Below, in pieces: positions 40,701 to 57,542 of a stretch of DNA of 64,000 nucleotides; the stretch's first letter is position 1; each line of letters begins with the position of its first letter. The DNA is from Schizochytrium sp. TIO01. Lineage: Eukaryota > Protista > Bigyra: Labyrinthulomycetes. Position numbers and translations under genes: made by a program. Location: positions 8,464,483-8,528,482 of the forward strand of contig SMSO01000032.1 of NCBI GenBank assembly GCA_004764695.1. Reading direction: 5' to 3'. The notes below the pieces were generated by a model. That model ran no database searches and was not told where the DNA came from. It saw nothing but the letters and a program-made list of their open reading frames with translations.

Positions 40701-43639
40701 CGCCTTTGCAAACGATGCTTTCAGGATCAAGGTTGAGAGAAAGTGTATCAAACGAGCGAGTGAAAGGGCTATGGCACTCGTTAGAGCAACGCTGAGTACA
40801 TTCAAAGACAACCTCGGAAGTGCATCATTCTTGGGCTTTGCAAGAGGCTCACATGTCGGGTCTCTTGAGATAGAAGAGTTGTTATCTGAGAAATACATGT
40901 CCTCTATAAAAAAATAGATTCTAGCGAACAGTTCTTCCGGGGTGAAAAGCCAGAAAGAATACTGCGACGGCAGTAACCAAACTTTATCATAGAATTTGCA
41001 CACGAAAATCATTGAAAGAATCGAAGCACATATCAGGGCAAGGATAAGCGCATTCGAACAGAGCTTCGAAGGTGCACGAATCTTGGGTTTTGCAGAATAC
41101 TCAACCACCGTACTGCAAGAAAGCGTTGGAGGTTCATGGATCTTAGGCTTTGCAGGAGGCTCGACTGCTGTGTCGCTCGCGACACAAGAATCGGCATCTG
41201 AGACATCAATGTCATCTTCGGGAGAGCAAACCCTAGAGAACAGCTCTTTGGGCAAGTAAACTTGATGAGAATAGCGTGACGGCGACCACCAAAAATCATC
41301 ATAGAAACTGTATTATATGAGAATAAATGAAAAATCAGAGAACTTGTTAGAAGAACGATAAATGCATTCGAATACAGCCTCACAAGTCCATTGAGGCACA
41401 TAAAACCAACGAAAGAAATGCTCGGGAGCGGCAAACAGCAGGTAGAGGAAACCAAACTTACTCGATGCGAACAGAAGAACATGCTTTATGCAGAGACTTG
41501 GCGATAGCCTTGTACCCCTCCTTTCCAATGTTGCTGTGAGAAAGACTGTGAACATTCCACTCATCTCCAGAGGCAATCCAAATCAGTTAGCATTTCGTTC
41601 GAGCATAGTTGACCCCCCCTCTTCTGATAATCGCAGACGACTTCGTCTGCGTTCCTTCCCCTAATTAACCACTCCTAATTAGCGCAATTTCATTAACGGA
41701 ACAAGTAAATAGTCGAGTTCTTTCCCCGTCCATCTTCATCTTCTCTTTCTTTCTTCTTGAACCACGACACGTTTTTGTACGCCTTTGATTTTATTCATCA
41801 AAAAGAAAGTTGTTATCCAGGGCAGAAATTAATTTCATGGGTTCGAAAAACGTACAATATATCTTTCAGATTGCTGCATCCCTCCAGAGCCTTTGCAACC
41901 GCCTTGATGCCCTCTGTGCCAATGTTGTTCTCTCGTAAACTGGGAGTATATTTTTGTTACCAAGAATCCAAACCAGTCAGTCAGACAATCTTTAATCCCT
42001 CGTCTTTTATTTTCTTTGTCTATTAGTTTTGAAAGTTCCAGAACCCGCTTTTTGCCGTTGCTAAGCAATTCTCATCATCATTCTCATCATCATTCTGGTC
42101 GCAATAGATTATTTAAATAAAAATCGACTTGTCCTGCTTTCAGCATGTTCTTTCTTTCAAAACGTACCACAGTGTTGTCAGGTTTGGGCAACCCTTCAGA
42201 GTTTTTGCCACGGCTTTGACGCCCTCATCACCAATTTTGTTGTTGTGTAGGCTGCGAGTGATTACTTGTTGCCCAGGCAGTTCAGTTAGTCCGCTTGTCA
42301 ATTAATTATTTTTCAAAGTAATCACAGAACCTTTCTTCAGCTTTAGCTGTCGCTCTGCTGGTTTTTATTTGCCCCCCTCACCTTCTTTTCTTTTTTTAAA
42401 GAAACTACAGATTTTTACGTAGTGAGGTTTCATCCTATGTTTTCATCGAACGAAAGAAACGAGGAAATGCATGCAGATTTTGTGGATCAAATAATACGTA
42501 CTTCAAGTTTGTCAGGTTCCTGCATCCCTCGAGTGTCTTTGCGAGAGCCTTAGCGCCATCAGTGCCAACATTATTATCTTTAAGACTGTTGGTGTTTCGC
42601 GTGTTTTCCAGACAAGTAAAGTCAGTCATTCGCTTGGGTGCTGTCAGTCCACGCTCCTTTTCGACAATCACAGCACTGGCTCTGCACTTCTTTTGCACAT
42701 TGTCCTTCACATTGAACACGAGTTCCTTTTCCTCTCTTTCTTTCTTTCTCTCCAAATTCTTTCGTTCAAAACTACTGCGTAAGGCCTTCCTGCAGATTAT
42801 TAAAAAACGTACTACATTGTTGTCAGGCTCTTGCACCCCTCCAGTGCCTTTGCGATGGCCGTGATGCCTTCATCGCCGATCTTGTTTCCAGAAAGACTGC
42901 AAATGTTTCGTTCATTGTCCAGACAATTGAAGTCAGTTACTCCCTGAGGTCACGTCCATGAATCCTATTCGAGGATTCGCTCTCCTTATACTCTTTCTTC
43001 TTCCTTTCTGTAGGAAATAAAAAATATCGGATTCGAGGTGACGTACTACAATTGTGTTAGGTCCTTGCATCCCTCTAGTGCCTTTGCGAGGGTATTCGCA
43101 CCCTCGTCGCCAATATTGTTTCCAGAAAGACTGTGGTCATGTTATTCGTTGTTTTAAAACAATCCAAGTTAATCAGCTTTCAATGAATTCTTCTAAAAGC
43201 AATCACATAACTGTTCCTGGCCTTGCGAGTGCCCTGTGTTCTCATCATGATTCTGATCGCTATGCTGTTGTCTCTTGTTTTTTTCATTTTCATTTTCTTT
43301 TTTCATTTTTAAATAATAAAAAAATTAACTGAAAAAAGATTTTGTTGTTGGTGTGTTTTTATGAAACAGCAAAAAGGAAACTGAATACTTCTGTGGATTC
43401 AAAACGTACCATAATAGTGTCAGGTCCTTGCATCGTTTCAGTGCCTTTGCAACAGCCTTAATACCCTCATCGTCGATGTTCTTATTGCGAAGACTATGTT
43501 TGTTGATTAAAAAAGGTAGTAAGTATATCACTGACTAGTTGAATAAGTGCCAATACAAAACAAGTCTACAAAGCTAATAAAGCGTCGATAACCCAAGCTT
43601 ACTCCTCTCGCGATTGCGAACCTACATTATCTCCCCCAT
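37756..43639 (-). CDS. Gene C: LRR x7 - triplicated linker with two hydrophobic segments - helical region - non-RD kinase - RING1/RING2, about 1323 aa from the in-frame ATG at 43639
   Basis: Exons: 43626..43639 (the ancestral start position 43678 reads AGG), 43410..43493, 43047..43130, 42813..42896, 42502..42585, 42168..42251, 41856..41939, 41462..41545, 40624..41307, 37756..40441. All introns are GT-AG and phase 2, and the frame is open. HCDIKPDN, DFD and APE motifs plus the zinc module as in gene A. Confidence 0.8.
41462..43493 (-). repeat. LRR exon array of gene C (7 x 84 nt)
   Basis: Seven 84-nt exons, mostly with GTACGT donors. Confidence 0.92.
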
Positions 43640-44672
43640 ATTCTTGTTGATCTCGTTTAAGGTCTGCAGCCCCGTCCTTGTCTTGCAAAATCTATCACCT
43701 TGGATGGAGCGAAACGTAGGTTTGATCGATCAACCACGCTGTCTGTCTTTCCTTTGCTTTACTTTACTTTGCTTTCGCTCTCAAGAGCAGTTTGCTGCTG
43801 ATCAGGTTTGACAACCCCTGGCCCGCACTGAAGGCGAAACACGCAAGCACTCGTCCGTGCCTCTGCAGGCCAAGCTCACCCGCAAGTAACGTAGTGGTGT
43901 AGCAATCAAGAGGTTGGGTGTTTCTGAGTTATGTGCACTCGCTAACTTGTGTTGAGGATTTGCAGTGATGGCTTTATAGCTACTTTCAATGATTTAAGGT
44001 ACTTCGTTTAAGGTCCACTCAGTCAATTTATCTTGAGAGCGCAACATGTGCAAACTGAAATCTACTATCAATAATTGGTACTCTCGAAGAGAGTCAAGAA
44101 GAAGTGTTATCTCCGTCATTCTGTCCAGGCCGTGTTGGGAATTTGTTAGATAATGTATCTTATCATTGCCTTCAACAAAGAAGTAACGCGCGAAAGGTTT
44201 GGCGTCGCATGGTCATCTGGAGAGTGTAAATCGGGCTCGCGGGCCTAGAATTAGCTAGTCCCGCTGATGGTATAATGGAGATGTGAGCGGTGGTTTGATC
44301 TTGAAAAGTCTTGAGACAGAGAGTTTTCTTTAAAAAGAATAGAGAAAGAATGCAGGTTCCCGCATTCAGGATTCTAGAGATAGAACATGTTGAAAGACAC
44401 TCGCGCTTTGGCTTTGAAGCAAGGGAAACACAGATGCACATTCAGGGATACCACGCCTACAAAAGAATTATCGAAAACTTGAAGTCTTCTTCCGAGATAG
44501 CAAACAAGAAAGATAGAAGCGCAGGAAAACATGGATCACGAGATGCGGCTATGCTAAGATCCGCAGTCGTCAAGACTGCTTTGAAAACAACAAGTAAAAG
44601 CCTACTTTCTCGTAAGTCATTGTCAGCAACATATTTTGAGAATTTCAATTATTCGAAATCTGTTCGATTAGT

Positions 44673-47600
44673 TTATTCCAATCTAAAATTTGCGCCAACA
44701 ATATCTGGTGTTAGCAAAGGTGACAGTAACTCTTTCAGAACGAGTCGAAGATTGCTATCCTGAATTTTTGAATTCCAGTACTCACGCAGACGTTCTGCGC
44801 GTAGCAGCCGCCAAGCCTCACGAACCTGCTCGAATGAATCAGCGAAATGTAGATCTTGCCCAAGTCTTCTTGAACAGGTTCTCACATGAGCATGACAAGC
44901 ATCTGCATCCTGAGAACTATAGCCAAGACACCAAGCGCAGAAGTGATGACCACAAGCACGATTAATACACTCTACAGCACAGCACTCATCAAAATCGCCC
45001 ACATAAGCGTTACAATTCGGGCAACATGTGCTCAAGATCTTCTCTTGAATATGTAGTAAATGATGCTTTGCGTCACTGTTCTGTTCACCTGCACGTAGAA
45101 CTCCTGCTATGCGCCTTTGGATCTCTTTCTCCGCCCAAACTGCTGCTTCATTTTCTGCCTTCATCTTCGCAATCAACAAAAGATGATTCAAAGCAGTTGG
45201 TGCAAGACGGGTGATTTCTTGACCTGATATCCTTCCACTACATTCAGGTTTCATGCATGCCATCGTTCCATCAGCATCCACTCTGACGTTAGCAAGTGGC
45301 CCTGCCGCCTCTTCTATTGAAGATTCGATACAGTCTCTGCAAAGGAAGTCTCCCTCCTCGCAGCTCGTGCCCTCGGAAAGCAGATGCTCCTCCATACATA
45401 CTAGACATTCCTTGAGAGGGATTTTAGGAGGTCCAAAAGCTTCATGTTGGAGTGCTTGGCGAGCGGTTGGACGCTGGCCAGGGTCTGTTGCTGTAAGAGC
45501 ATCGATAAGTTTCTGCATTGCAGCGGTTCGCTCAGTAGGATACAGCTCCTTTAAGCTGATGCCCACAGAGTACATGTCCATCGCTGTTTCAAACCTATCT
45601 ACAGGCCCATTCTGCAACTCGGGGGCAACGTACCGTGGCGTTGCCTGAAGTGATGTGTAAGTTGCCGTGTAGTCTGCATTCTTGATGCCGTCAAAGTCGC
45701 CGATCAATGGTGTCCCGTTGCTTGTAAGGAAAATGTTTTCTGGTTTGATGTCACAATGCACAATGCCGTGGGTATGTAAATCCGCCACGCCGATGAGTAG
45801 GCCCACAGCAAGTCGGTCGCGCGCTGCTTTGCCTTCGTTAGGATGAGACTCAATCCACTTGGCAAGGTCACCTTGCTCGTAGAAAGGCATGACAATACAG
45901 CCACGCGGTGCTCCATGAGTCATGTCCACAAAAGCACCAGTGATACGGATCACGTGCTGAGAAACCACTTTGCCCAGATTGGCAACTTGTTTGTAGAAGG
46001 TTTTAGATTGACTTAGATGTTCAAGCTGAAACTGCTTGAGAACTAGAGTTCTGCCATCTCCATCAAGAACCTTCTGGACAGTCTTACCTCCTCTGGAAGC
46101 TAGGAGATCTCCAACAGGCTTGAAGTCTGAAATCTCGACGTTTGCCAGCCAAAGATCAGAACAAGCTACTTCAAAAACACCTTCTGTACTTACATGAAGC
46201 CTTTCCAGCCAGGCTCTATCTTGCAGCAACTCTGGATAATGTTCCTGCGCGTGTTGCAGAGTCTCAGCAAGCTTATGACAAAAAGCTTTGCTAAGCTCGA
46301 TAGGGTTGCCTTGAGAGAGAATGAGCTCTTGTTTCTTGATACGATTTCTAAAATATGCTCGATCTTCCTCATCAAAGTCCTCAGCGTCGACAGCTTCTCT
46401 AGCTCTTCTTAAGCTTTCTGTGGCTTTCCTCGACTTGTCAAGTTTCTGGTATAATGCTTCCACATCTGAGACAGAAGGTTCTTTCAAATCCAGTACTGCA
46501 TAGTCATATAGTTCGAAGAGCTCTTTTGGTATGCACTTGCTCGCGTCATTCAACGCAGAACTTTCAGAGTATCCTTCAAATCGAGCAAATGTTGAACTTA
46601 TCGCGCAAAGTATTTTGCACAATTGGGCACGAAGTGTATCTCCTTGTAGAGCTTCAATCTCTTCCTTGAGAGCACTCTCAAGTTCAGACAACTCGGGTTC
46701 TAGCTCCATGGCCTGGTCGGGTGTTCTCAGAGCAACCGATAATCCATCACCAAGTTCTAGCTCAGACAATCGAGAGACGACGCGTTTTACAGCCTGTTGG
46801 CTTCGTTCACCAATGTTGTTGAGGAGTTGGCCTTCTCCACTCCTTTTATACCCTTCCACGCATTGAACAGCCTGAACAACGAGTTCTTGGCAGTGTTTGA
46901 AGTCATCTGTGCTGGTATCTTCATCGACTGGTGCAAGGTTGATCTTTAGATCTTGTACCAAACTTTCAACTCTCACTTTGAATTCTCGCACTGCACTCTC
47001 ATCACTTTCGCAAAGGTTAGCGCGAACCCATGGGTACACGACCTGCAAAAGTGAATGCAGGTGCCTCCGCTCGGTGTTCCGTTTTTCGATGAGGCTGGGC
47101 AAGACATCTGCAGAGCTTGCACGAATCTGGCTTTGTAGCTTGTCCAGACCCTCTTTGGAGTTCTTGATGTCAGCGGAAACCTGTCGCAACTTCACTTGGC
47201 CAAAGTAGCCCTGGATCGTCGGTCGAACGAATTCCTCAAGCAGGGCAATCCCAGCCTGCAGGGAGTTTCCTCTGACCCCGCCTCGGTCCGCGCGCAAGTC
47301 CGAGACTTTCTTGGCAAGCTGCACCACATCAGCGAAACTCACGCTCGCTCCATCCAGCCGTTGTCTAAGGCGAACAAGACAGAAGAAGCAGCAACAGAGG
47401 CAGAAGCAAAAGTTAGAATTCCCAATATCTCAACAACACAATTCGTGGAATGAATGCTCGCGGTCCCAAACATAGAAGTCGCATGAACTTACTGAGATCT
47501 ATCTAAACCGCGAGGCTCCGTAGCAAGCCCGGCGCCAGCGACGCCATCTTGCACGCTCTTGGACTCTAAAAGAGGCTTGCATTTTGCTGCCTCTATATAG

Positions 47601-50600
47601 GTACAGGAATCGCTGTCTAATGAGGAATCGGCAATGTCCTCCGCTGGAGAACACACCCTTTCGAACAATCGTTTAGGCGTCAAAGGTCTCCAACCGTAGA
47701 TACTGCGTTTCGGAAACGAATGAATAACGCGAATGAAAGAGAATAAAAGCGCGTGTTAGAAAAACGATGAACACATTCAAAGACGACCTCGCAAGTCCAT
47801 GGAGACACAGAGAGAACCATAGAAGGCAAAGCTCTGAGCAGAGGGAACGGAACTTACTAGATTTTAACAGAAGGACATGCTTTGTGCAGAGACTTTGCGA
47901 CGGCCTTTGCGCCCTCTGAGCCAATATTGTTGCCCAAAAGACTGTGAGTATAAATAAACAATGAGCTCAGAGAGACAGCTCCGTCAGTGATTCGATTCAT
48001 CCTCTTTATTTATTTTTCAAAACGCCTAGTAAAAAAGTAATCACCTCTTCTTTTCTGCCTTCGCGTTTTATGAAGACACCACAGTAGATTTCCCCTTTCC
48101 CTCCCTTCTTCTCTTTTAATTTTAAAAAAGCAGGTAAAGAGTTGTTTTCCTTTCTAAACTACTCAACTACTTAGGTAGTACTAGCAGTGTTTTCATCTTG
48201 ATTCCTTGCCCCCCCTTTCCAAAAACAAAAAATGAAAGAAGGAAAGAAGGAAAGAAGGAAGGAATGAAAGAAAGAAACAGATAAACCATAGTAGGTTGGT
48301 ATTACCTGTTATGAGGCTACCTACATATAGCTTTCTGTGCAAACTTACTTCAATTCTGTCAGGTTCTTGCATCCCTCGAGTGCCTTTGCGAGTGCCTTCG
48401 CACCCTCATCGCCAATGTTGTTCTGATCAAGACTGTGAGTGAAAATAAGTCCATCCGTTTCGAGTGAGTCAGTCGATTCTCTTCTTCATCAAAGCAATCG
48501 CATAAGTCTTCCTATGGCCCAATTTGCGAATTGATTGGGCTTCGTTATTCTGATCGCATTCTTCTTTGCGTTACGAAAAATATATTTTGAAAACCTCGAA
48601 ACTTGAGATCATTTTTTCTCCTCAAGGCTTTCTTCTTTCAAGCTCTTATTTTCTCCCCTACCCACTGCCATAACAAAGCTTCTGCTTCTATTCGAATACA
48701 TAAACAAACAAACAGAAGAACTCTTGTGTACTATTACACTACTCTCCCCAAACTTACTTCAATTCTGTCAGGTTCTTGCATCCCTCGAGTGCCTTTGCGA
48801 GTGCCTTCGCACCCTCATCGCCAATGTTGTTCTGATCAAGACTGTGAGTGAAAATAAGTCCATCGAGTTCGAGTGAGTCAATCATTCGTCTTCTTCATTA
48901 CAACAATCGCAGAAGCTTTCTTCGGGTTCTATTTGCAAATTAATTGGCCCTTGTTACTCTGATTGCATTTTGGTTTGTTTTTACAAAAAGAAAGAAAAAG
49001 AAGAACTCCCGACTCTTCACAAACTTACCTCAATATTGTCAGGTTCTCGCATTCCTCCAGTGCCTTTGCGACCGCCTTGACACCCTCATGGCTAATGTTG
49101 TTCTGGTTAAGGCTGCGAGTATAAATAAGTCCATCGATTTCAAGTGAGTCAGTCGATCCTCATTTTATATACAACAATTATGGAACTCTTCTTGTTCCGG
49201 TTCAATTTACAAATCTATTAGCCGTGGTTATTCTGATATCGCATTTCTATTTACCAAAAAATTATTTTGAAAACCTAAAAACTTGAGATCATTCTTTTTA
49301 AAGGCTCTCTTTCCTTCCTTCTCGCGCTCAATCTTTTTTTTTTCTTTACCAGTATTTATTTTATAACTCTCGTGTACTACTCTACTCTCCAGAAACTTAC
49401 CTCAGTGTTTTAAAGTTCTTGCATATCTCCAGTGCCTTTGCGTCTGCCTTGGCACCCTCATCGCCAATGTCGTTCCGATCAAGACTGAGAATATAAATCA
49501 GTTCATCCATTTCAAATCAGTCAGTCGATCCTCTTCTTCATTACAACAATCACTGAGTTTCCGTCTGACCCTATTTGCAAAACAATTGGCCTTTTTTACT
49601 CTGATCGCCTTTGCGAAGAGAATGAAAAAGAAGTACTAGCACTCTTTTAAACTTACCTCAATTCTGTCAGAAATCGTACGCTAACACCACAAGCATCCTC
49701 TAGACTTTGAGTAGAATCAGTTTCCTCACGCCTTTGAGAAAGTCCAGCAGTGCGCGAAATATTTTCCTTGGTGATTGCGCGCTTTCTCGAACTTATCAGC
49801 AATACCAGAATGGGTTTCAAAATTTGAAGAAAAGCGCCAAGCAAACTTGGCCTCAACGATACTATAAAATTGAAGATAAATCTTAGAGAATCTGTCCGAG
49901 GTTTAGAGAAAGCTCGGGTCTCACTGCTTTCGGTGTTCTCCCCTTGGCCTGACCTTCTGCGCTTGCCTGCGCCTTCACTACTCGAAGACGTACTTGAATC
50001 TCCCTGATTGTTGGCTAGCACTTTGCCGACCAGGTTTTTTAAGGTTCCGCAAGTATTTTCGTCCAAATTGTCTGGGCATAACAAAGCCGCGCACCACTGG
50101 TTGAATTTCTTGAGTTTTTCTCCATCAAAGTCTTCATGATAGAAGATCTTTGCAATATCTACCATCCCACTAGTGTAGTTATCTCGCAGCATTCTTACGC
50201 ATAAATAGGCCTTGAAGAGAAAAGAATCGTCTAGATCTAGGGGTAATCTGAAAGTGTCACGAGAATCAGATGGATTTTCTTGGTTTTTTTTTTTAAGATA
50301 TTGTTGGACTTTCTGTACAATGTCTTTTTTTTTCTGCACCTGATCGATCAATCGATAGAAAACTTCGAAAGCAGGTGGTTCACCTCGGGTCATTTCGCCG
50401 GAATTTTTAGGAATGCCTCCAAATTGAATCCAGCGAGAGATCTCACCGTGCCTGTATTCTGTGGACAATCCCAAAAGCTTATCTAAGTGTCTAAGAACAT
50501 CTTTTTGAAAATAATTAAGCACCTTCTTCTTCTTCTTCTTCTTCCCCCCATTATTATCATTCTTCTTCTTCCCCCCATTATTATCATTTTTTTTTTTTTC

Positions 50601-51296
50601 CAACGGTTTGTCCATTTTTTCCAACATGTCTTTCAAGACTTCAGAAAGATTTTGACCCTCAAACGATTGCCAATGTGTCTCATCATTGAAGATAAGGCGA
50701 AAAACCACACGCTGTAAACATCTCTTTGTTTCTTCGGAAATATTTGTATCAGTGACCTTTCTGTTTTGTTGAATGTTTTCCAGTGGATTGCTTAGAATGC
50801 TCCCCAAAATTCTAGTTGCCTTTGTTCGAGCTACAAATTGACTAGAATTTTGAACGAGAACTTCATCTCTCAAATCAACCAGGAATTCGGTGATCTTTTG
50901 AATGTCGTCTCCACTATATGGACGATTATCGTATGTAATTTGCTTCCGGGCGTGAAAATTCTGTTGTTCTCCTTGTTGTGGCCCTTCTGGTCCTTGTGGA
51001 GGAGAAGAAGATATTGTGTTGACGTCAACCTCTCTCTGCGAAGCACCAATTCCCCCAAAGTTACTATCTGTAGAAGCTTGAGAGCTTTGACCTCTGGAGG
51101 TAGTAGAACTTAATGGAGATTCACGAAGCAGCGGGCTATCTGTCATAGTGTGAATATTTTGTGAATCTTCACTGTCTTCTTGTGGATGATTTCCTAAATC
51201 ATCATCTCGATGAGGTAACGATGGGTAATTTATATAAGGAACCTCCGACTCAAACTCCTCCTCGGTACATTCGATTAGATCATCTAATTCACTCAT
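44673..51296 (-). CDS. Gene D: captured N-terminal region (paralog of the gene E N-terminus) - LRR x5 - linker - helical region - non-RD kinase - RING1/RING2, 1653 aa predicted
   Basis: Exons: 49657..51296, 49401..49484, 49029..49112, 48758..48841, 48349..48432, 47858..47941, 47493..47702, 44673..47364. All introns are phase 2 and the 4962-nt frame is open. The 547-aa ORF ends in CTGACAGAATTGAG|GTAAGT, which is the 3' end and donor of an LRR exon. Confidence 0.78.
47858..49484 (-). repeat. LRR exon array of gene D (5 x 84 nt, plus a terminal LRR-exon fragment at 49657-49670)
   Basis: Exons 48349..48432 and 48758..48841 are identical to each other, and the introns resemble gene A introns. Confidence 0.93.
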
Positions 51297-53058
51297 CGTT
51301 CTTGTCTAAATGCACCACTTTGCAGAATGCAAAATGTCAAAATCAGCCAACGAAGCCTATTCAAGTGTGAAAATGAGCTTGTCACTTTCAACCAGAAGCT
51401 AAAACGGAGCTGTTCTTCACACTTCTTCGAGCGTACGCTCCCGTGGGCGGCGCCACTTCTGGAACTGCTGATTCGCGATGATACAAGTCGTACAGCCACG
51501 CCTCAGCTGTCTGAAAAGGTTTTGCAAGCTGTAGCAAACTGAGCCAGCGGCGAAGATATCTGTTTATATTTGGTTGGCAATAACGATACGTGGCAGAAAG
51601 TAGATATTAATAAGATAAATCCGTTAGAGGATATTCTGCATAGTCCAGATCACCTCTCCTACTTCTTCGCATTGTGCGGACTGCCACCCAGCCTATGAAT
51701 AGATGTTTCCAGTTTCATCCTCAATCTCTAGATCTTCATACTCATCAATAGGCATGCCAATATTCTCCTCCGTCATCATGATTTCCTCAGGATTAACTTC
51801 TGCAAGCCATCAACCGGAGACCCAGATTGAATAAACTCAGCCCAACGCTCTTGTAATATCGATCCACCTTTAAGATATACCCCTTTTTCTCGGTACGGCG
51901 TGTACCAAACCGGGGAGACTACGCAAAGTTTTTCAAGTTAGCGGATTTGGCTGGCCTGCCTACACTCTCTGTCAGAGGCTACTACTACCAGTCCTTTCAC
52001 CTGGCCAAAGACTCAAGTCGAAGCGTGTTACTTGAGTCTGCCATGCTGTCTTGCGATTCAAACGGAAAAGCTTGCTGTTAGAACGATATAGATTGGAGTT
52101 GGAACGTTCCGGGGCATTGTTCTGTTTGTTCTGTATCACCCGCCCTTCCCTCATGGGCAAATACGGAATTGCGTCACTATTCCTATAGGGATTTCATTCA
52201 TTTCATCCTTTAGTCTCAGGCTAGTTTCGTTCAAGTTATATGTCAAAGAACTCATTGGATAAATTTGGTTCAATTAAAAATTTCATGGGCAACTATCGCA
52301 GCTTGGTAGGTAGAGAGATGAAGGAACATAATAGTTAGGATTAGCATTCTGAAACTGCTGACAAAGACTGTTGATTTAGTCCAGGCTTTGGCTTTATGCA
52401 CGTCATACTGAAGGTGTTCTTGTAGATACACAGCTTCGTACATACTTAGCTGCGATACGTTAACAGTTTCATTTATAGAACTTCTAGATCAACTTGAGAG
52501 TTAGTCATTTGGATGATGGATACTCAATCATTCCAAATGCTATCTCATCTTCCTCACTCTTTGTGCGAGCATTGCTACTGACGCTGGTTAGGCTACTCGA
52601 ACCAAAAACCTTAAATGTTGTTAAAATTGTGTTGTATTCATATCAGCTGAAACGCAGAAATTATGTGGATAATATGCCAATCATTGTATAATCAGTTGGT
52701 TCAAAAATTTGCAGATAATTTCATTGATTTGGGGAAACATATTATATGTGGACCTCTTGGGATACTGTTAGTTGTCGAGTGTCTCAGATCTTGAAGCCTT
52801 CCTGATGTTCGCACTTCGACAATCACTTCGATCTACTTGGTTTCTTGAACTGAGGGAAAAGACCACTCAGCGTTAACCATAGAAAACATCGCTGCTCATA
52901 GTCCCTTCACCCATATTTCATACCTCGCATTGTTTCGGTTGTTAATGCGCGGCAGCGCGTCGTCTTGGAAGGGTTTGCAAAACTGCTAGTGGCCATCTGG
53001 TATTATCTACTGCATGGTTTTACATATCTAGCTAGGAGTAGAGGTACAACTTTGCCAT

Positions 53059-53111
53059 GTTCTCCGCTCCCCACTAATAGTTCTCCGCACCCCACTAATA
53101 GTTCTCTGCCC
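53059..53111. repeat. 21-bp tandem repeat (about 2.5 copies) in the intergenic region between divergent genes D and E
   Basis: GTTCTCCGCTCCCCACTAATA / GTTCTCCGCACCCCACTAATA / GTTCTCTGCCC. Confidence 0.8.
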
Positions 53112-53726
53112 TGCGAATGGTTCGCCGCTCCTGCGAGTTCCTTTTCCAGCTTATGTCAGCATTGAAAAAGAGCTAGTTTTCTTTCTTCTCTTATGGTGAG
53201 ATGCCCAACCTCAACACTGAGAGGTGTATTGTGTACACTTGGGGTAAAAACTCAAGCACATTTATGCTCCTAAGTTTGTGCAGATTTTGCACATTAGAGG
53301 TAGGTTAAGAGATTTCCTTAACCAAAGCTTACCTAGTTATGTGTAGTATGGTAGTCATAAAAGAACGGATTTATAGGAAGAACCTGTATCGTATTTCTAT
53401 TTCCTCTCAAATGATAGAGCCTTGAAAAGATAATCGTAATACCTCTACTACGTAGGCGAATTTGTCTAAACTGTCAAGCACAAAGCTTTATTTCTGCAGA
53501 AGTGGAAACGGGAGCTAGTTTGCTTTGAATGAAAGCGTGCTGAGAGGTTTTTCAGCAGAACCTCTGTTCAGTTTTCGTGGCTCCAAGAACAGAGGGAAGG
53601 GACCTGCACTTTCTACTCGTCAATCTTCGTTCACAGCTGCCTGCGTAGAAGTGAGGTTGAGAGGACATCTTTTCAACGATTACTTACGCCTTGAAGACTC
53701 GTCTCAGTCCTGCGCATATTTGTCCA

Positions 53727-56700
53727 ATGGGCGACAACAACACCCAGCAGAATGAGAACTCTTCTTATGGAGACGAGCTCAATTTTTCTGAAGAGATAAT
53801 TAATGATGTTTTTCCTGATCCTAAGGTGCGTAACAAGCTCGGTTTGGCGAAGGCTGACCAAGAGACCAATCATAAGAACGACCAAGGCCCATCAGCAACC
53901 CAGCAGCAAAATCCACCGGCCCAACATGCACCTAAGTCTAGCAACACTATGGTAGATGATGATTCCCAGACTTTCGCCTCAGTCAGTAGCGGTGGTGATC
54001 AACAAATTGCGGACAATAGGCAACCGAGTGAAAATGAGCGCAGCGGTTTTAAGACAAACGATATTCCGAATCGTTCATGTGAACTACAGGGCGATGCACT
54101 TTCTTTATCACCCGAACCAGACTTGAGTAATCAAGTGAACTTGACGTCATGTTCGCTAAACTCATGGCAACCAGGCCGTTTTACGCACATTTTCCCCATT
54201 TTAGTAGTGAATCAGATGTACTTTTTAAACTCACAGTCAAACAATGGGAGAAATTCCGCAGCCTCACTACTTGGTCATCACATGTATGTTCCACTGAAAA
54301 CTATCAATGGTGAAGAAATGTTACCTGTTGACACAAGGGAAGGGAAAAATCAGTTAAAACAATACGTCCGTCGAATTGTATTTCCATTCGATGATTCATA
54401 TCCAAAATGGACGGATCTTTCCTTTAAGGCCTTTGTGAAGATTTTGAAGTCTTGCAAGAAGGTTAACTTGCTTCAAAAATCTATCGTGGAGTGTCTTATG
54501 GAGCTGTTGGAGGAAGCAGATGAAGAAACGCAACAATCAAAGCTAAAGTCATGGCTTAAATATGGTGGCACAAAGATTGACAGCTGTCAAGACCTGAAAC
54601 GTGGAGAAGTTTACATTTACGAGAGCCTTGCAAAAATTATTGAGCATGCGCAACAGGTCACAGAGAGGGAAGAGATGGAAAAGGTTCGAAAGGTATTGAA
54701 AGAGAACAAATGCGAACTCAATAATAAAGAAGCTATAGCGCAATGTCTCAGTTATAGCCTAGTGAGTCGATCCAGTACACTCGGGTTCTTAAAGCTTGCA
54801 AACATACTTGTTCATTTTTCCGGGGAGCAACACAAAAAATTCAACCAATGGTGTGCGGCGTTGCTATTTCCAGATAAGATGGACCAGGATGAAAAAAAAA
54901 GTCTCAGAAAAGAACTTTTACGAATCAAGTCGCTGGACTCTTCACAGAATCCAGGTAATGGAAAGGGCCCCGGCAATGAAAGTAGAACTTCCAAGGGAAA
55001 GCGTCAACACAACGAATCTACGGATAACCCGCAAACAGAAAAGAAACCTTGTCACAGATCTCATCTTATTTTGAGCCAGTTCATACTGCAACTCCTTCAT
55101 GGTGCGGGTCTCATGTTTCGGAACACGCTTGAATTTGCCTACTCCCGATGTTTTCAGATTTTGCAATCCTCATTTGTATCTTTCAAAGAGAGATATTCAA
55201 GAAGCTTGCCTCTAAATGAGCAGCCATTTGATGTTTTAGATCAGAAATCTGATCAAGATTCTCCTGAAGACGCCTGTGGAGTAAGCATCCATTTTCTTAC
55301 CCTATACTACCGCTACGTGCATCAAAAGGCAGAAAGGGATTCAGGTGAAGATCTGGATCTTAATTCATTGAATATGTACAAGATTGTCAATCACATTCTC
55401 CCACAAAATAGCGTGGTGACTACAGGCGGGCAGGGTAGTAAATCTGTACGAGATGATTGGTCAATATGCTATCATACAATGAGTTCAGAGAGTGAGAGTT
55501 ATAACTGTGCTCAGAGCCTAGTATCCTTGCTCCGTTCTGGATCTGAAAAAGGCGAACAGCTCAAATGTGAACTTCTTGCTCTAGCTACTACTGCGTCCGA
55601 AAAAGACTTTCAAAGTTGGTTTAGAACTCCTTCGCGATATGTATGTTATGCTTGGAAATTACCATTTGTCCAGTTTGTGGATGCTATTCGGTCGACCTTC
55701 TTGCGGTCTAATTCATTTGCTGATGATGAGTATCTTTGGATCGACGCATTCGCACTGCCTCAAGCAAATGTCAAGAACTTACATATCAAGAATGATCCAT
55801 TAGACAACACGCCTAAAAGAGTATGGAGTCAGCAATTGAAGAGAAACATTAACCGTGCTACGAAAGGATTGTTGATCATTGCAAATGAATGGAACGCACC
55901 TAATGTTTTAAGCCGCTCGTGGTGCTGGCTTGAAATATCCTTCGCACTGAGCCTGAACAAGGCATTGCAGCTTGCACTGACTAACAAAGAGTTCAAGAAG
56001 CTTGAGGAAGTAAGTGAGGAATACCTTTCTCAGACGTATTCTGAGGACAACATGTTGGCGAAGGTTGACGAAACAATTAAGAAAATGTCATTTGAAGAAA
56101 GTGAGTGCAGTGAACCAGAAGATCAAGCACTTATTCAGGAACTTTTCCTGAGCAGTGAAAATAGTTCACACGTGCAGGGTCAAATTAGGAGCTCTTTTGT
56201 TGAGTTGTTGCTCAAACCTGCTGAGAAACGCATTCAAAATCACAAAGGAGGTATTAATCCAACAGAATTCATCAACAAGGTCAGACCTTACCTGACAATC
56301 GAAAACCTTGCTGATGCGACGTTGAAAACAGCCGCATGCTTCACAATCAGTGGTTCAAGTGAGGGGATAGCTCTCATTGATGGGGTTGTTGCTGAACTTC
56401 GAGAGCAAATTACGAACTTGCCAACTTTAAATAAGCGCCGACAAAATCTTGAGATCAAGTTAGCAAGGCTTTTGAGTAGTCAGGGGCGAATGTATGGTGA
56501 TCAATTCTGTAACGAAACTGTTCCAAATGCACTTCGGTGTCATGAGGAAGCGTACAATATCATGAAACGCAACGATTGTAGAGCGTTGTATCTGGTAGAG
56601 TACTTCTGGGCTAGAGTGCTTGTCAATCATCACTATAATTTATTCAACAAAAATAATCATAGCCCACGAGACAAAGTGTCAGACCTAAAAAAAGCGGAAG

Positions 56701-57542
56701 AACTTCTGGACAGTTCCTCCAAGTATTTGCAGAACAATGAGCCTTCCAATGGCACTTTAGGAGCGATACATGTGCACCAAGCGAAAATCATGGATATTAA
56801 ATCTGCGCCTCATTCTGAGGTTCTAGAGAAATTTGAACGAGCGCTTGATATACAAACTGCCATCTATGGTCCTAGAGACATGCGTTGTGCTATGACAGTT
56901 AGGTGTTTGGGAATGAGCCATGCATATCGTGGTAGTTTCTCACGTGCTCTTGGGTACTGGTGCCATACATTTGATCGGCTGCGTGAAGGATCAGAGGCTC
57001 GTTCATTTTCAGCAGAGCAGCTACTCTGGCTGCTTGAGTTTATCATGAACGGCTTCAAAAAATGGAGAGAAAGCAATGAATTAAAGCTAATATATGGAGA
57101 GCAAGAGTTGGACTTTATTCGCACTCGAGGAGAGCCAACACTGCGCCACATTTTGCAAGTATCAGACAGGAAGGTTCTTGATGCACATAAAGATTTGGTC
57201 ACTAGGCTATTACGGTGGGTGCAGAGAAAATTGCGGAGGACAGTGGTTTGTGTGACGGATATCACTATAGCACATCAAATTAAGGAGGATTTATCCAACG
57301 AACATTGCTCTGATGTTGATATTGCCTTGAAAGACGCAGATGTGAAGAGCATTCTCCAAAAGAAAATCGTTGCTGTTGTAATTTATGACAAGGATTTCTG
57401 GAAGCAGAGTGATATCAAGAGGCTCTGGGGGGAGACATTTCAAAACGAAAAACCCCATTTTATACACTGGCGTGATTATGAACTCTTGAATGATGAGACC
57501 CTAATCTCGGAACTGGCTACTGCAGTCCAAAATGCTCATTGA
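53727..57542 (+). CDS. Gene E: uncharacterised N-terminal region - HET-like (TIR-related) domain - TPR-like helical repeats, about 1271 aa, single exon
   Basis: Long uninterrupted ORF whose first ATG is at 53727. Motifs GVSIHFL, YVCYAW, YLWIDAFALPQ, PNVLSRSWCWLE and SECSEPEDQALI match the HET-like pattern SYxW/WIDxxxxxQ/RxWxxxE. The C-terminal FERALDIQTAIYGPRDMRCAMTVRCLGMSHAYRGSFSRAL resembles kinesin-light-chain-type TPRs. Confidence 0.75.
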   Translation: MGDNNTQQNENSSYGDELNFSEEIINDVFPDPKVRNKLGLAKADQETNHKNDQGPSATQQQNPPAQHAPKSSNTMVDDDSQTFASVSSGGDQQIADNRQPSENERSGFKTNDIPNRSCELQGDALSLSPEPDLSNQVNLTSCSLNSWQPGRFTHIFPILVVNQMYFLNSQSNNGRNSAASLLGHHMYVPLKTINGEEMLPVDTREGKNQLKQYVRRIVFPFDDSYPKWTDLSFKAFVKILKSCKKVNLLQKSIVECLMELLEEADEETQQSKLKSWLKYGGTKIDSCQDLKRGEVYIYESLAKIIEHAQQVTEREEMEKVRKVLKENKCELNNKEAIAQCLSYSLVSRSSTLGFLKLANILVHFSGEQHKKFNQWCAALLFPDKMDQDEKKSLRKELLRIKSLDSSQNPGNGKGPGNESRTSKGKRQHNESTDNPQTEKKPCHRSHLILSQFILQLLHGAGLMFRNTLEFAYSRCFQILQSSFVSFKERYSRSLPLNEQPFDVLDQKSDQDSPEDACGVSIHFLTLYYRYVHQKAERDSGEDLDLNSLNMYKIVNHILPQNSVVTTGGQGSKSVRDDWSICYHTMSSESESYNCAQSLVSLLRSGSEKGEQLKCELLALATTASEKDFQSWFRTPSRYVCYAWKLPFVQFVDAIRSTFLRSNSFADDEYLWIDAFALPQANVKNLHIKNDPLDNTPKRVWSQQLKRNINRATKGLLIIANEWNAPNVLSRSWCWLEISFALSLNKALQLALTNKEFKKLEEVSEEYLSQTYSEDNMLAKVDETIKKMSFEESECSEPEDQALIQELFLSSENSSHVQGQIRSSFVELLLKPAEKRIQNHKGGINPTEFINKVRPYLTIENLADATLKTAACFTISGSSEGIALIDGVVAELREQITNLPTLNKRRQNLEIKLARLLSSQGRMYGDQFCNETVPNALRCHEEAYNIMKRNDCRALYLVEYFWARVLVNHHYNLFNKNNHSPRDKVSDLKKAEELLDSSSKYLQNNEPSNGTLGAIHVHQAKIMDIKSAPHSEVLEKFERALDIQTAIYGPRDMRCAMTVRCLGMSHAYRGSFSRALGYWCHTFDRLREGSEARSFSAEQLLWLLEFIMNGFKKWRESNELKLIYGEQELDFIRTRGEPTLRHILQVSDRKVLDAHKDLVTRLLRWVQRKLRRTVVCVTDITIAHQIKEDLSNEHCSDVDIALKDADVKSILQKKIVAVVIYDKDFWKQSDIKRLWGETFQNEKPHFIHWRDYELLNDETLISELATAVQNAH

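Follow-up and report, generated by a model that had tools for sequence, protein, structure and literature searches.

Integrated domains are carried by some plant nucleotide-binding leucine-rich repeat receptors (NLRs), and head-to-head NLR pairs such as RGA5/RGA4 and RRS1/RPS4 are known. TRIM5-CypA (TRIMCyp) and jingwei are chimeric genes, and in fungal pairs of the NWD2/HET-S type the common terminal region is a 21-residue amyloid motif. The subject of this report is gene D of the labyrinthulomycete Schizochytrium sp. TIO01, located in a stretch of 64,000 nucleotides (nt) of contig SMSO01000032.1 (positions 8,464,483 to 8,528,482; assembly GCA_004764695.1), the whole of which is referred to below as the window. 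Four genes of a leucine-rich repeat (LRR)-kinase family, A, B, C and D, were identified on the minus strand of the window, with 84-nt exons encoding one LRR each; the cassette arrays of this family have been published as non-coding LORE-TEARS repeats (bioRxiv 10.1101/2023.06.15.545109). Gene E lies head-to-head with D. Based on the homologies described below, D is probably a genuine chimera, most likely functional, which arose from a DNA-level join between a paralog of E and an LRR-kinase gene and which later exchanged sequence with its paralogs.

The junction between E-family sequence and LRR cassette

The open reading frame (ORF) of 547 amino acids at 49653..51296 (minus strand) exists as described in the initial annotation, with its first in-frame ATG at 51296. 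Exon 1 of gene D occupies 49657..51296 (minus strand; 1640 nt with a phase-2 end, equal to 546 residues and two bases of a split codon) and encodes an acidic low-complexity leader followed by the helical N-domain of the E family. A BLASTP comparison with E gave 27% identity over ~310 columns (E-value 5e-22), with residues 255-544 of D pairing with residues 253-537 of E (numbered from a TTG), and all three motif pairs quoted in the initial annotation are present. This core of the homology (49665..50534, minus strand) includes KKFNQWCAALL and EDACGVSVRFLT and stops at FLT. Judging by a three-way alignment, exon 1 appears collinear over its entire length, acidic leader included, with the first ~525 residues of E. 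Exon 1 also contains a 27-nt in-frame tandem duplication (50524-50577), which encodes KKKNDNNGG twice, with a stretch of Lys residues after it.

Downstream of TTT, the sequence is CTGACAGAATTGAG up to the end of the exon and continues with GTAAGTTT, the donor (GTAAGT) starting at 49656. The 14-nt stretch (49657..49670, minus strand), which encodes LTEL and the split Ser codon, is the remnant of an LRR exon 3' end and equals the ends of the D LRR3 and LRR4 exons except for the last base (AG, not AA). The intron which follows (49485..49656, minus strand; 172 nt with a GTAAGT donor, a CGACTGACT branch-like motif and a CAG acceptor) is of the LRR-cassette type and can be aligned from end to end with introns of the LRR arrays of D and A, while its closest copies elsewhere are 76-81% identical (genome-wide searches covered 64 Mb in 37 contigs). 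Exon 1 ends in phase 2 as does every LRR exon, and its final AG is completed to a Ser codon by the T of the following exon. The described succession, in which the homology ends at FLT and is followed by an LRR exon end, its donor and an LRR-type intron, was thus borne out by the alignment and by the 14-nt and 172-nt matches.

The E-family block GVS[ILV]xFLx-[LV]xxR[YF] spans the break point in every E-family gene aligned, with no intron there, and only its first half (GVSVRFLT) is retained in D. Since the break falls inside a conserved block devoid of introns, the join was made at the DNA level. In an AlphaFold2 (AF2) model of E residues 226-800 the N-domain was poorly modelled, and the predicted local distance difference test (pLDDT) score rose to confident values (87-88) at just this place, where a short strand (VSI) leads into a helix (HFLTLYYRY...); the position of the break in D lies four residues into this confidently modelled helix. 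Judged by the alignments and the model, the join is a DNA-level truncation inside a conserved element and not exon shuffling at a domain border. The Leu-Thr codons at the join are CTG ACA in D, the same as in the LRR exons, versus CTT ACC in E, and the residue after FL differs among E paralogs (T, N, R or K); both codons may therefore derive wholly from the LRR side. The microhomology at these codons proposed in the initial annotation is not supported by this comparison.

Misassembly was raised as a concern in the initial annotation, and the region is indeed rich in repeated cassettes. Nevertheless, only ~22 nt of sequence are shared across the join. On the exon-1 side, the junction sequence occurs once in the genome. 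On the intron side, as for LRR exon 1, identity to other copies reaches 81% at most, so that a false join driven by repeats is unlikely. A random mis-join would have the correct frame and phase in about 1 in 3 cases, and its placement at the last 14 nt of an exon would not be expected. An artefact of assembly through the LRR cassettes is accordingly regarded as extremely improbable.

Origin of the parts of gene D

Close copies of the N-domain were found only in D and E in the whole genome, and among the LRR-kinase genes it is carried by D alone. For the C-terminal part of E, contig C30 holds six or more clear paralogs (29-36% identity), the N-termini of which gave weak collinear BLASTP matches to the E N-domain, two of them also matching D. 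When a profile was constructed from the six paralog N-termini, with E excluded, it matched residues 139-408 of D with an hhalign probability of 96.7% (E-value 3e-10). The E-family N-domain motifs ...F..WCAA.L... and GVS..FL are present in D. As the N-domain occurs in the E paralogs and, among LRR-kinase genes, only in D, it is native to the E family and was acquired by D, and the direction of transfer read from these homologies is from the E family to D. The view of the initial annotation that D is the 5' half of an E paralog fused in frame to the end of an LRR exon therefore holds with respect to phase, open frame and origin of the N-domain. As to the search it proposed for an unfused parent of the exon, E is the closest and the only other close copy, and no second E-type C-terminal part was found near the window. 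Two long ORFs of the C30 cluster, at 7519793-7523221 and at L010:3246-5168, contain an E-family N-domain, but no TIR or TPR match was seen in their frame; either the N-domain exists there as a free protein, or a gene has been split by an intron or a frameshift.

Gene E (53727..57542, plus strand; 1271 amino acids from the ATG), the closest relative of D exon 1, consists of the N-domain, a TIR/HET-like region, TPR repeats and a C-terminal part. The TIR/HET-like core (Y.CYAW ... YLW.D.FA.PQ) and the TPR repeats are absent from D, in which the homology ends at FLT and LRR exons come next. The HET label used for the family in the initial annotation was not supported by Pfam, as no match to HET (PF06985) was obtained in E even at E-values up to 10. 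A fold search with E residues ~633-765 gave weak matches to TIR, ThsB and deoxyribosyltransferase structures (Z 4.6-5.4, Foldseek E-value >=0.77), on the basis of which the label "HET/TIR-like" is plausible. No NTPase domain (NB-ARC, NACHT) was detected in Pfam scans of D exon 1, the D last exon and E.

On the LRR-kinase side, gene D has the array typical of the family, five 84-nt phase-2 exons at 49484-47858 which each encode one RI-type LRR, the last one ending in ...SLHKACPSV.I. On the minus strand these are LRR exon 1 (49401..49484; LDRNDIGDEGAKADAKALEICKNFKTL), LRR exon 2 (49029..49112), LRR exon 3 (48758..48841), LRR exon 4 (48349..48432) and the terminal LRR exon (47858..47941; SLHKACPSVKI in D). 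They are followed by a linker exon of 210 nt with both ends in phase 2 (47493..47702, minus strand) and by the last exon (44673..47364, minus strand), which encodes a coiled region, a protein kinase domain (Pfam Pkinase, E-value 9e-30), a Cys-rich RING/RBR-like tail and the stop codon. The tail gave weak RING matches (Pfam zf-C3HC4_4, E-value 5.4; PDB RNF4, E-value 0.05), and its Cys pattern is kept in the paralogs. The introns in the window are of the form GTAAGT...CAG; all splice junctions of D, which has seven introns, are canonical and in phase 2, and every exon is open in the expected frame. The exons were analysed one by one, with no search made for the spliced junction sequence, and by arithmetic their joint coding length is 4,959 nt, which corresponds to 1,653 codons.

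The segments of this array differ in their closest relatives. LRR cassettes 3 and 4, introns included, share 86-87% nt identity with gene A over 537-650 nt, whereas the region 47961-47200 is 77-79% identical to genes of the dispersed main clade of the family versus 68% to A. At the protein level the last exon shows 80-90% identity to ~40 dispersed copies, many of which lie close to the end of a contig, and 66% to the neighbours A and C; the stretch of D that starts with the terminal LRR exon and runs to the stop codon groups with the main clade (~90% amino acid identity) and not with the local A/C clade (66%). Gene D itself has diverged copies as neighbours and lies ~515 kb away from the end of its contig. 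Because cassettes 3 and 4 resemble gene A and the part from the terminal LRR exon onward is of the main-clade type, D is by these identities a three-part mosaic of an E-family exon 1, A-like LRR cassettes and a main-clade kinase/Cys-rich 3' part.

Other genes of the family start with a canonical block, composed of a conserved 5' untranslated region, a 53-nt exon 1 (M..RI.DI..DTT..) and an intron 1 of ~165 nt. This block was seen in each of the ten copies sampled, and the genome holds at least 40 such loci. A BLASTN search with this block matched A, B and C and gave no match in 49485-53700. The absence from D of the 53-nt exon and promoter, which the initial annotation had ascribed to A, B and C in common, was thus verified, but the exon is intact only in A and B among these three, and the A and B promoters have diverged so far that BLASTN does not match them to each other. 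In gene C (~43623-43690, minus strand) the canonical ATG reads AAG, and another ATG is situated 14 nt before the GTAGGT donor, which would restore a phase-2 first exon (MGEI...). A main-clade copy on contig C7, upstream of the kinase exon 1065570-1068233, has a first exon with indels and a stop (ATGACTAGGCAAGTATAA...) and is either a pseudogene or the result of a sequencing error. Five main-clade kinase exons had no canonical 5' block among the matches listed (C35:2708734, C33:4817200, C6:1075931, C30:1734965 and C13:7345228); these are either unscored candidates or further 5' replacements.

No ORF of 80 or more amino acids lies entirely inside the intergenic region between D and E (51297..53726; 2.4 kb), from which the two genes diverge, and neither an Rfam match nor the canonical promoter block of the LRR-kinase genes was found there. 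Between the upstream regions of D and E the only inverted matches were coding homologies, with no remnant of an inverted duplication.

Signs of selection and possible expression of gene D

Exon 1 of D is free of in-frame stops, of which each of the five remaining frames has 20-48 and shuffled sequences have 36.5 on average, and it has stayed open despite ~70% residue divergence from E, its nearest relative. The 27-nt tandem duplication in it preserves the frame. In the kinase exon, D-specific changes were counted at sites where eight close paralogs agree; 28 were synonymous and 20 nonsynonymous, giving a ratio of nonsynonymous to synonymous rates (dN/dS) of ~0.21, while neutrality predicts ~77% nonsynonymous changes. 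On these counts both halves of D look selected.

The same data bear on the possibility that D is a relic, that is, a beheaded LRR-kinase gene and a truncated E-like gene which are both non-functional and have not yet decayed. Several members of the LRR-kinase family are pseudogenes with stops, D has 5 LRR exons compared with up to 15 in other sampled copies, and an orthologous fusion was not found in the protein library or the metagenome scans mentioned below. However, a relic would hardly have diverged by ~70% in exon 1 free of stops where ~36 are expected, nor would it show a dN/dS of 0.21 on its own branch in the kinase exon or canonical splice sites in all seven introns. We therefore regard this explanation as very unlikely.

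Several observations weigh against a functional fusion. The TAA of the ORF lies inside the donor, so that an unspliced transcript would encode a stand-alone protein of 547 amino acids. The N-domain has no recognisable fold or function: it has no match in Pfam and no usable match in the ESM Atlas, and the AF2 model of D exon 1 had a pLDDT of 34. Lastly, neither a library that stands for 15 billion proteins nor two metagenome scans yielded a D-like protein. The exact sequences of D exon 1 and E are absent from the protein collection, which appears to lack this genome, and the absence of D-like proteins there therefore says little.

The position of this TAA, directly after ...FLTELR, would also suit an arrangement of two units, in which a stand-alone E-like protein of 547 amino acids is made and the LRR-kinase is expressed separately from an internal start, e.g. 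the ATG in intron 1. This ATG, at the 3' end of the intron, is situated 26 nt before the acceptor (49485-49510, minus strand) in frame with LRR exon 1, and could serve as an alternative start if the intron were retained or transcription started inside it. Within LRR exon 1 there is no in-frame ATG. Taken together, this absence and the signs of selection favour a translated fusion, though selection on each half alone is not proof that the halves are translated jointly. Against two units stand the lack of a canonical promoter or first exon between the two parts, a gap of just 172 nt which carries full splice signals homologous to those of functional LRR introns, and an exact match of phase across the intron; such an arrangement is considered unlikely.

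A phmmer search with D exon 1 against 1.84 billion representatives returned a single protein, P0001, which was found only in Logan assemblies. From its residue 99 onward P0001 is 97% identical to E, and its leader is D-like and not that of E, with 62% identity over residues 41-120, including 23 consecutive identical residues (the D leader is encoded at 51117-51296 of the window). The switch occurs at homologous alignment positions. This suggests that the leader of P0001 is a patch left by gene conversion, in another strain, between 5' ends of the D and E types.

For the chimera favoured here, we infer the following origin. In the ancestral state an old E paralog would have stood head-to-head with E, with an LRR-kinase gene of the paralog's own orientation downstream of it. 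By the simplest route, a single deletion could have joined the two, removing the TIR/HET-like and TPR parts of the paralog as well as the start of the LRR-kinase gene, from its canonical promoter through the 53-nt exon 1 and intron 1 to the first one or more of its LRR exons. The join would have fallen inside the conserved E-family block, in frame and 14 nt before the donor of an LRR exon. Splicing at the retained donor would give a single frame of 1,653 codons encoding the N-domain, 5 LRRs, the linker, the kinase and a Cys-rich ligase-like tail, and transcription would presumably start from an E-type promoter region used divergently by D and E. Later exchange with paralogs may have rendered the LRR cassettes A-like and replaced the 3' part by, or maintained it as, the main-clade type. 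Exon 1 would have diverged alone because it had no donor paralog.

Comparison with known systems

The LRR-kinase family, which numbers 50 or more members, is read as a candidate variable receptor repertoire. Gene D is the one detected copy in which the front end has been swapped for a module of a second candidate defence-type family (TIR/HET-like and TPR), the closest member of which adjoins it. Taken by itself, an in-frame chimera is no surprise in a gene family that evolves fast; if the fusion is expressed, it would be a natural experiment in the modular rewiring of protist receptor-like genes, and would lead to the hypothesis that both families work together. By analogy, D and E could form a co-regulated head-to-head pair which communicates through the common N-domain, D acting as an LRR sensor with kinase/ligase output and E as a TIR/HET-like executor. 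This proposal is quite doubtful. Should it be true, two large candidate immune families of a protist, both unannotated, would be physically connected through this pair, in the manner of paired plant NLRs or fungal NLR/effector pairs, and the D-type leader on the E allele in P0001 would represent ongoing exchange which keeps both N-termini compatible.

With the thraustochytrid LRR-kinase-RBR-like family, gene D shares the 84-nt phase-2 LRR exons, the type of the terminal LRR, the linker exon and a ~90% identical kinase/Cys-rich last exon. It differs in the lack of the canonical promoter, 53-nt exon 1 and intron 1, and in having only five LRRs.

Like plant NLRs with integrated domains, D is a member of a variable LRR receptor-like family which carries a domain from an unrelated gene and stands head-to-head with a partner. 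Neither NB-ARC nor NACHT was found in the exons of D scanned (exon 1 and the last exon), however, and the foreign module, for which a decoy-like role was considered in the initial annotation, takes the place of the canonical first exon and promoter and is not an addition to them. In contrast to the plant NLR pairs, the neighbour E comes from the donor family and is not a helper from the receptor family. With TRIM5-CypA and jingwei, D has in common the in-frame fusion of parts of two unrelated genes, a defence-type family and the reuse of an existing splice site. There is no retroposition signature at D, for which the likeliest route is deletion or illegitimate recombination between neighbouring genes. 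The NWD2/HET-S-type pairs of fungi are resembled in that D and E are adjacent and have a homologous terminal region, a putative HET/TIR-like effector part being combined with a repeat sensor; the region common to D and E differs in that it is ~540 amino acids in length, helical and partly disordered.

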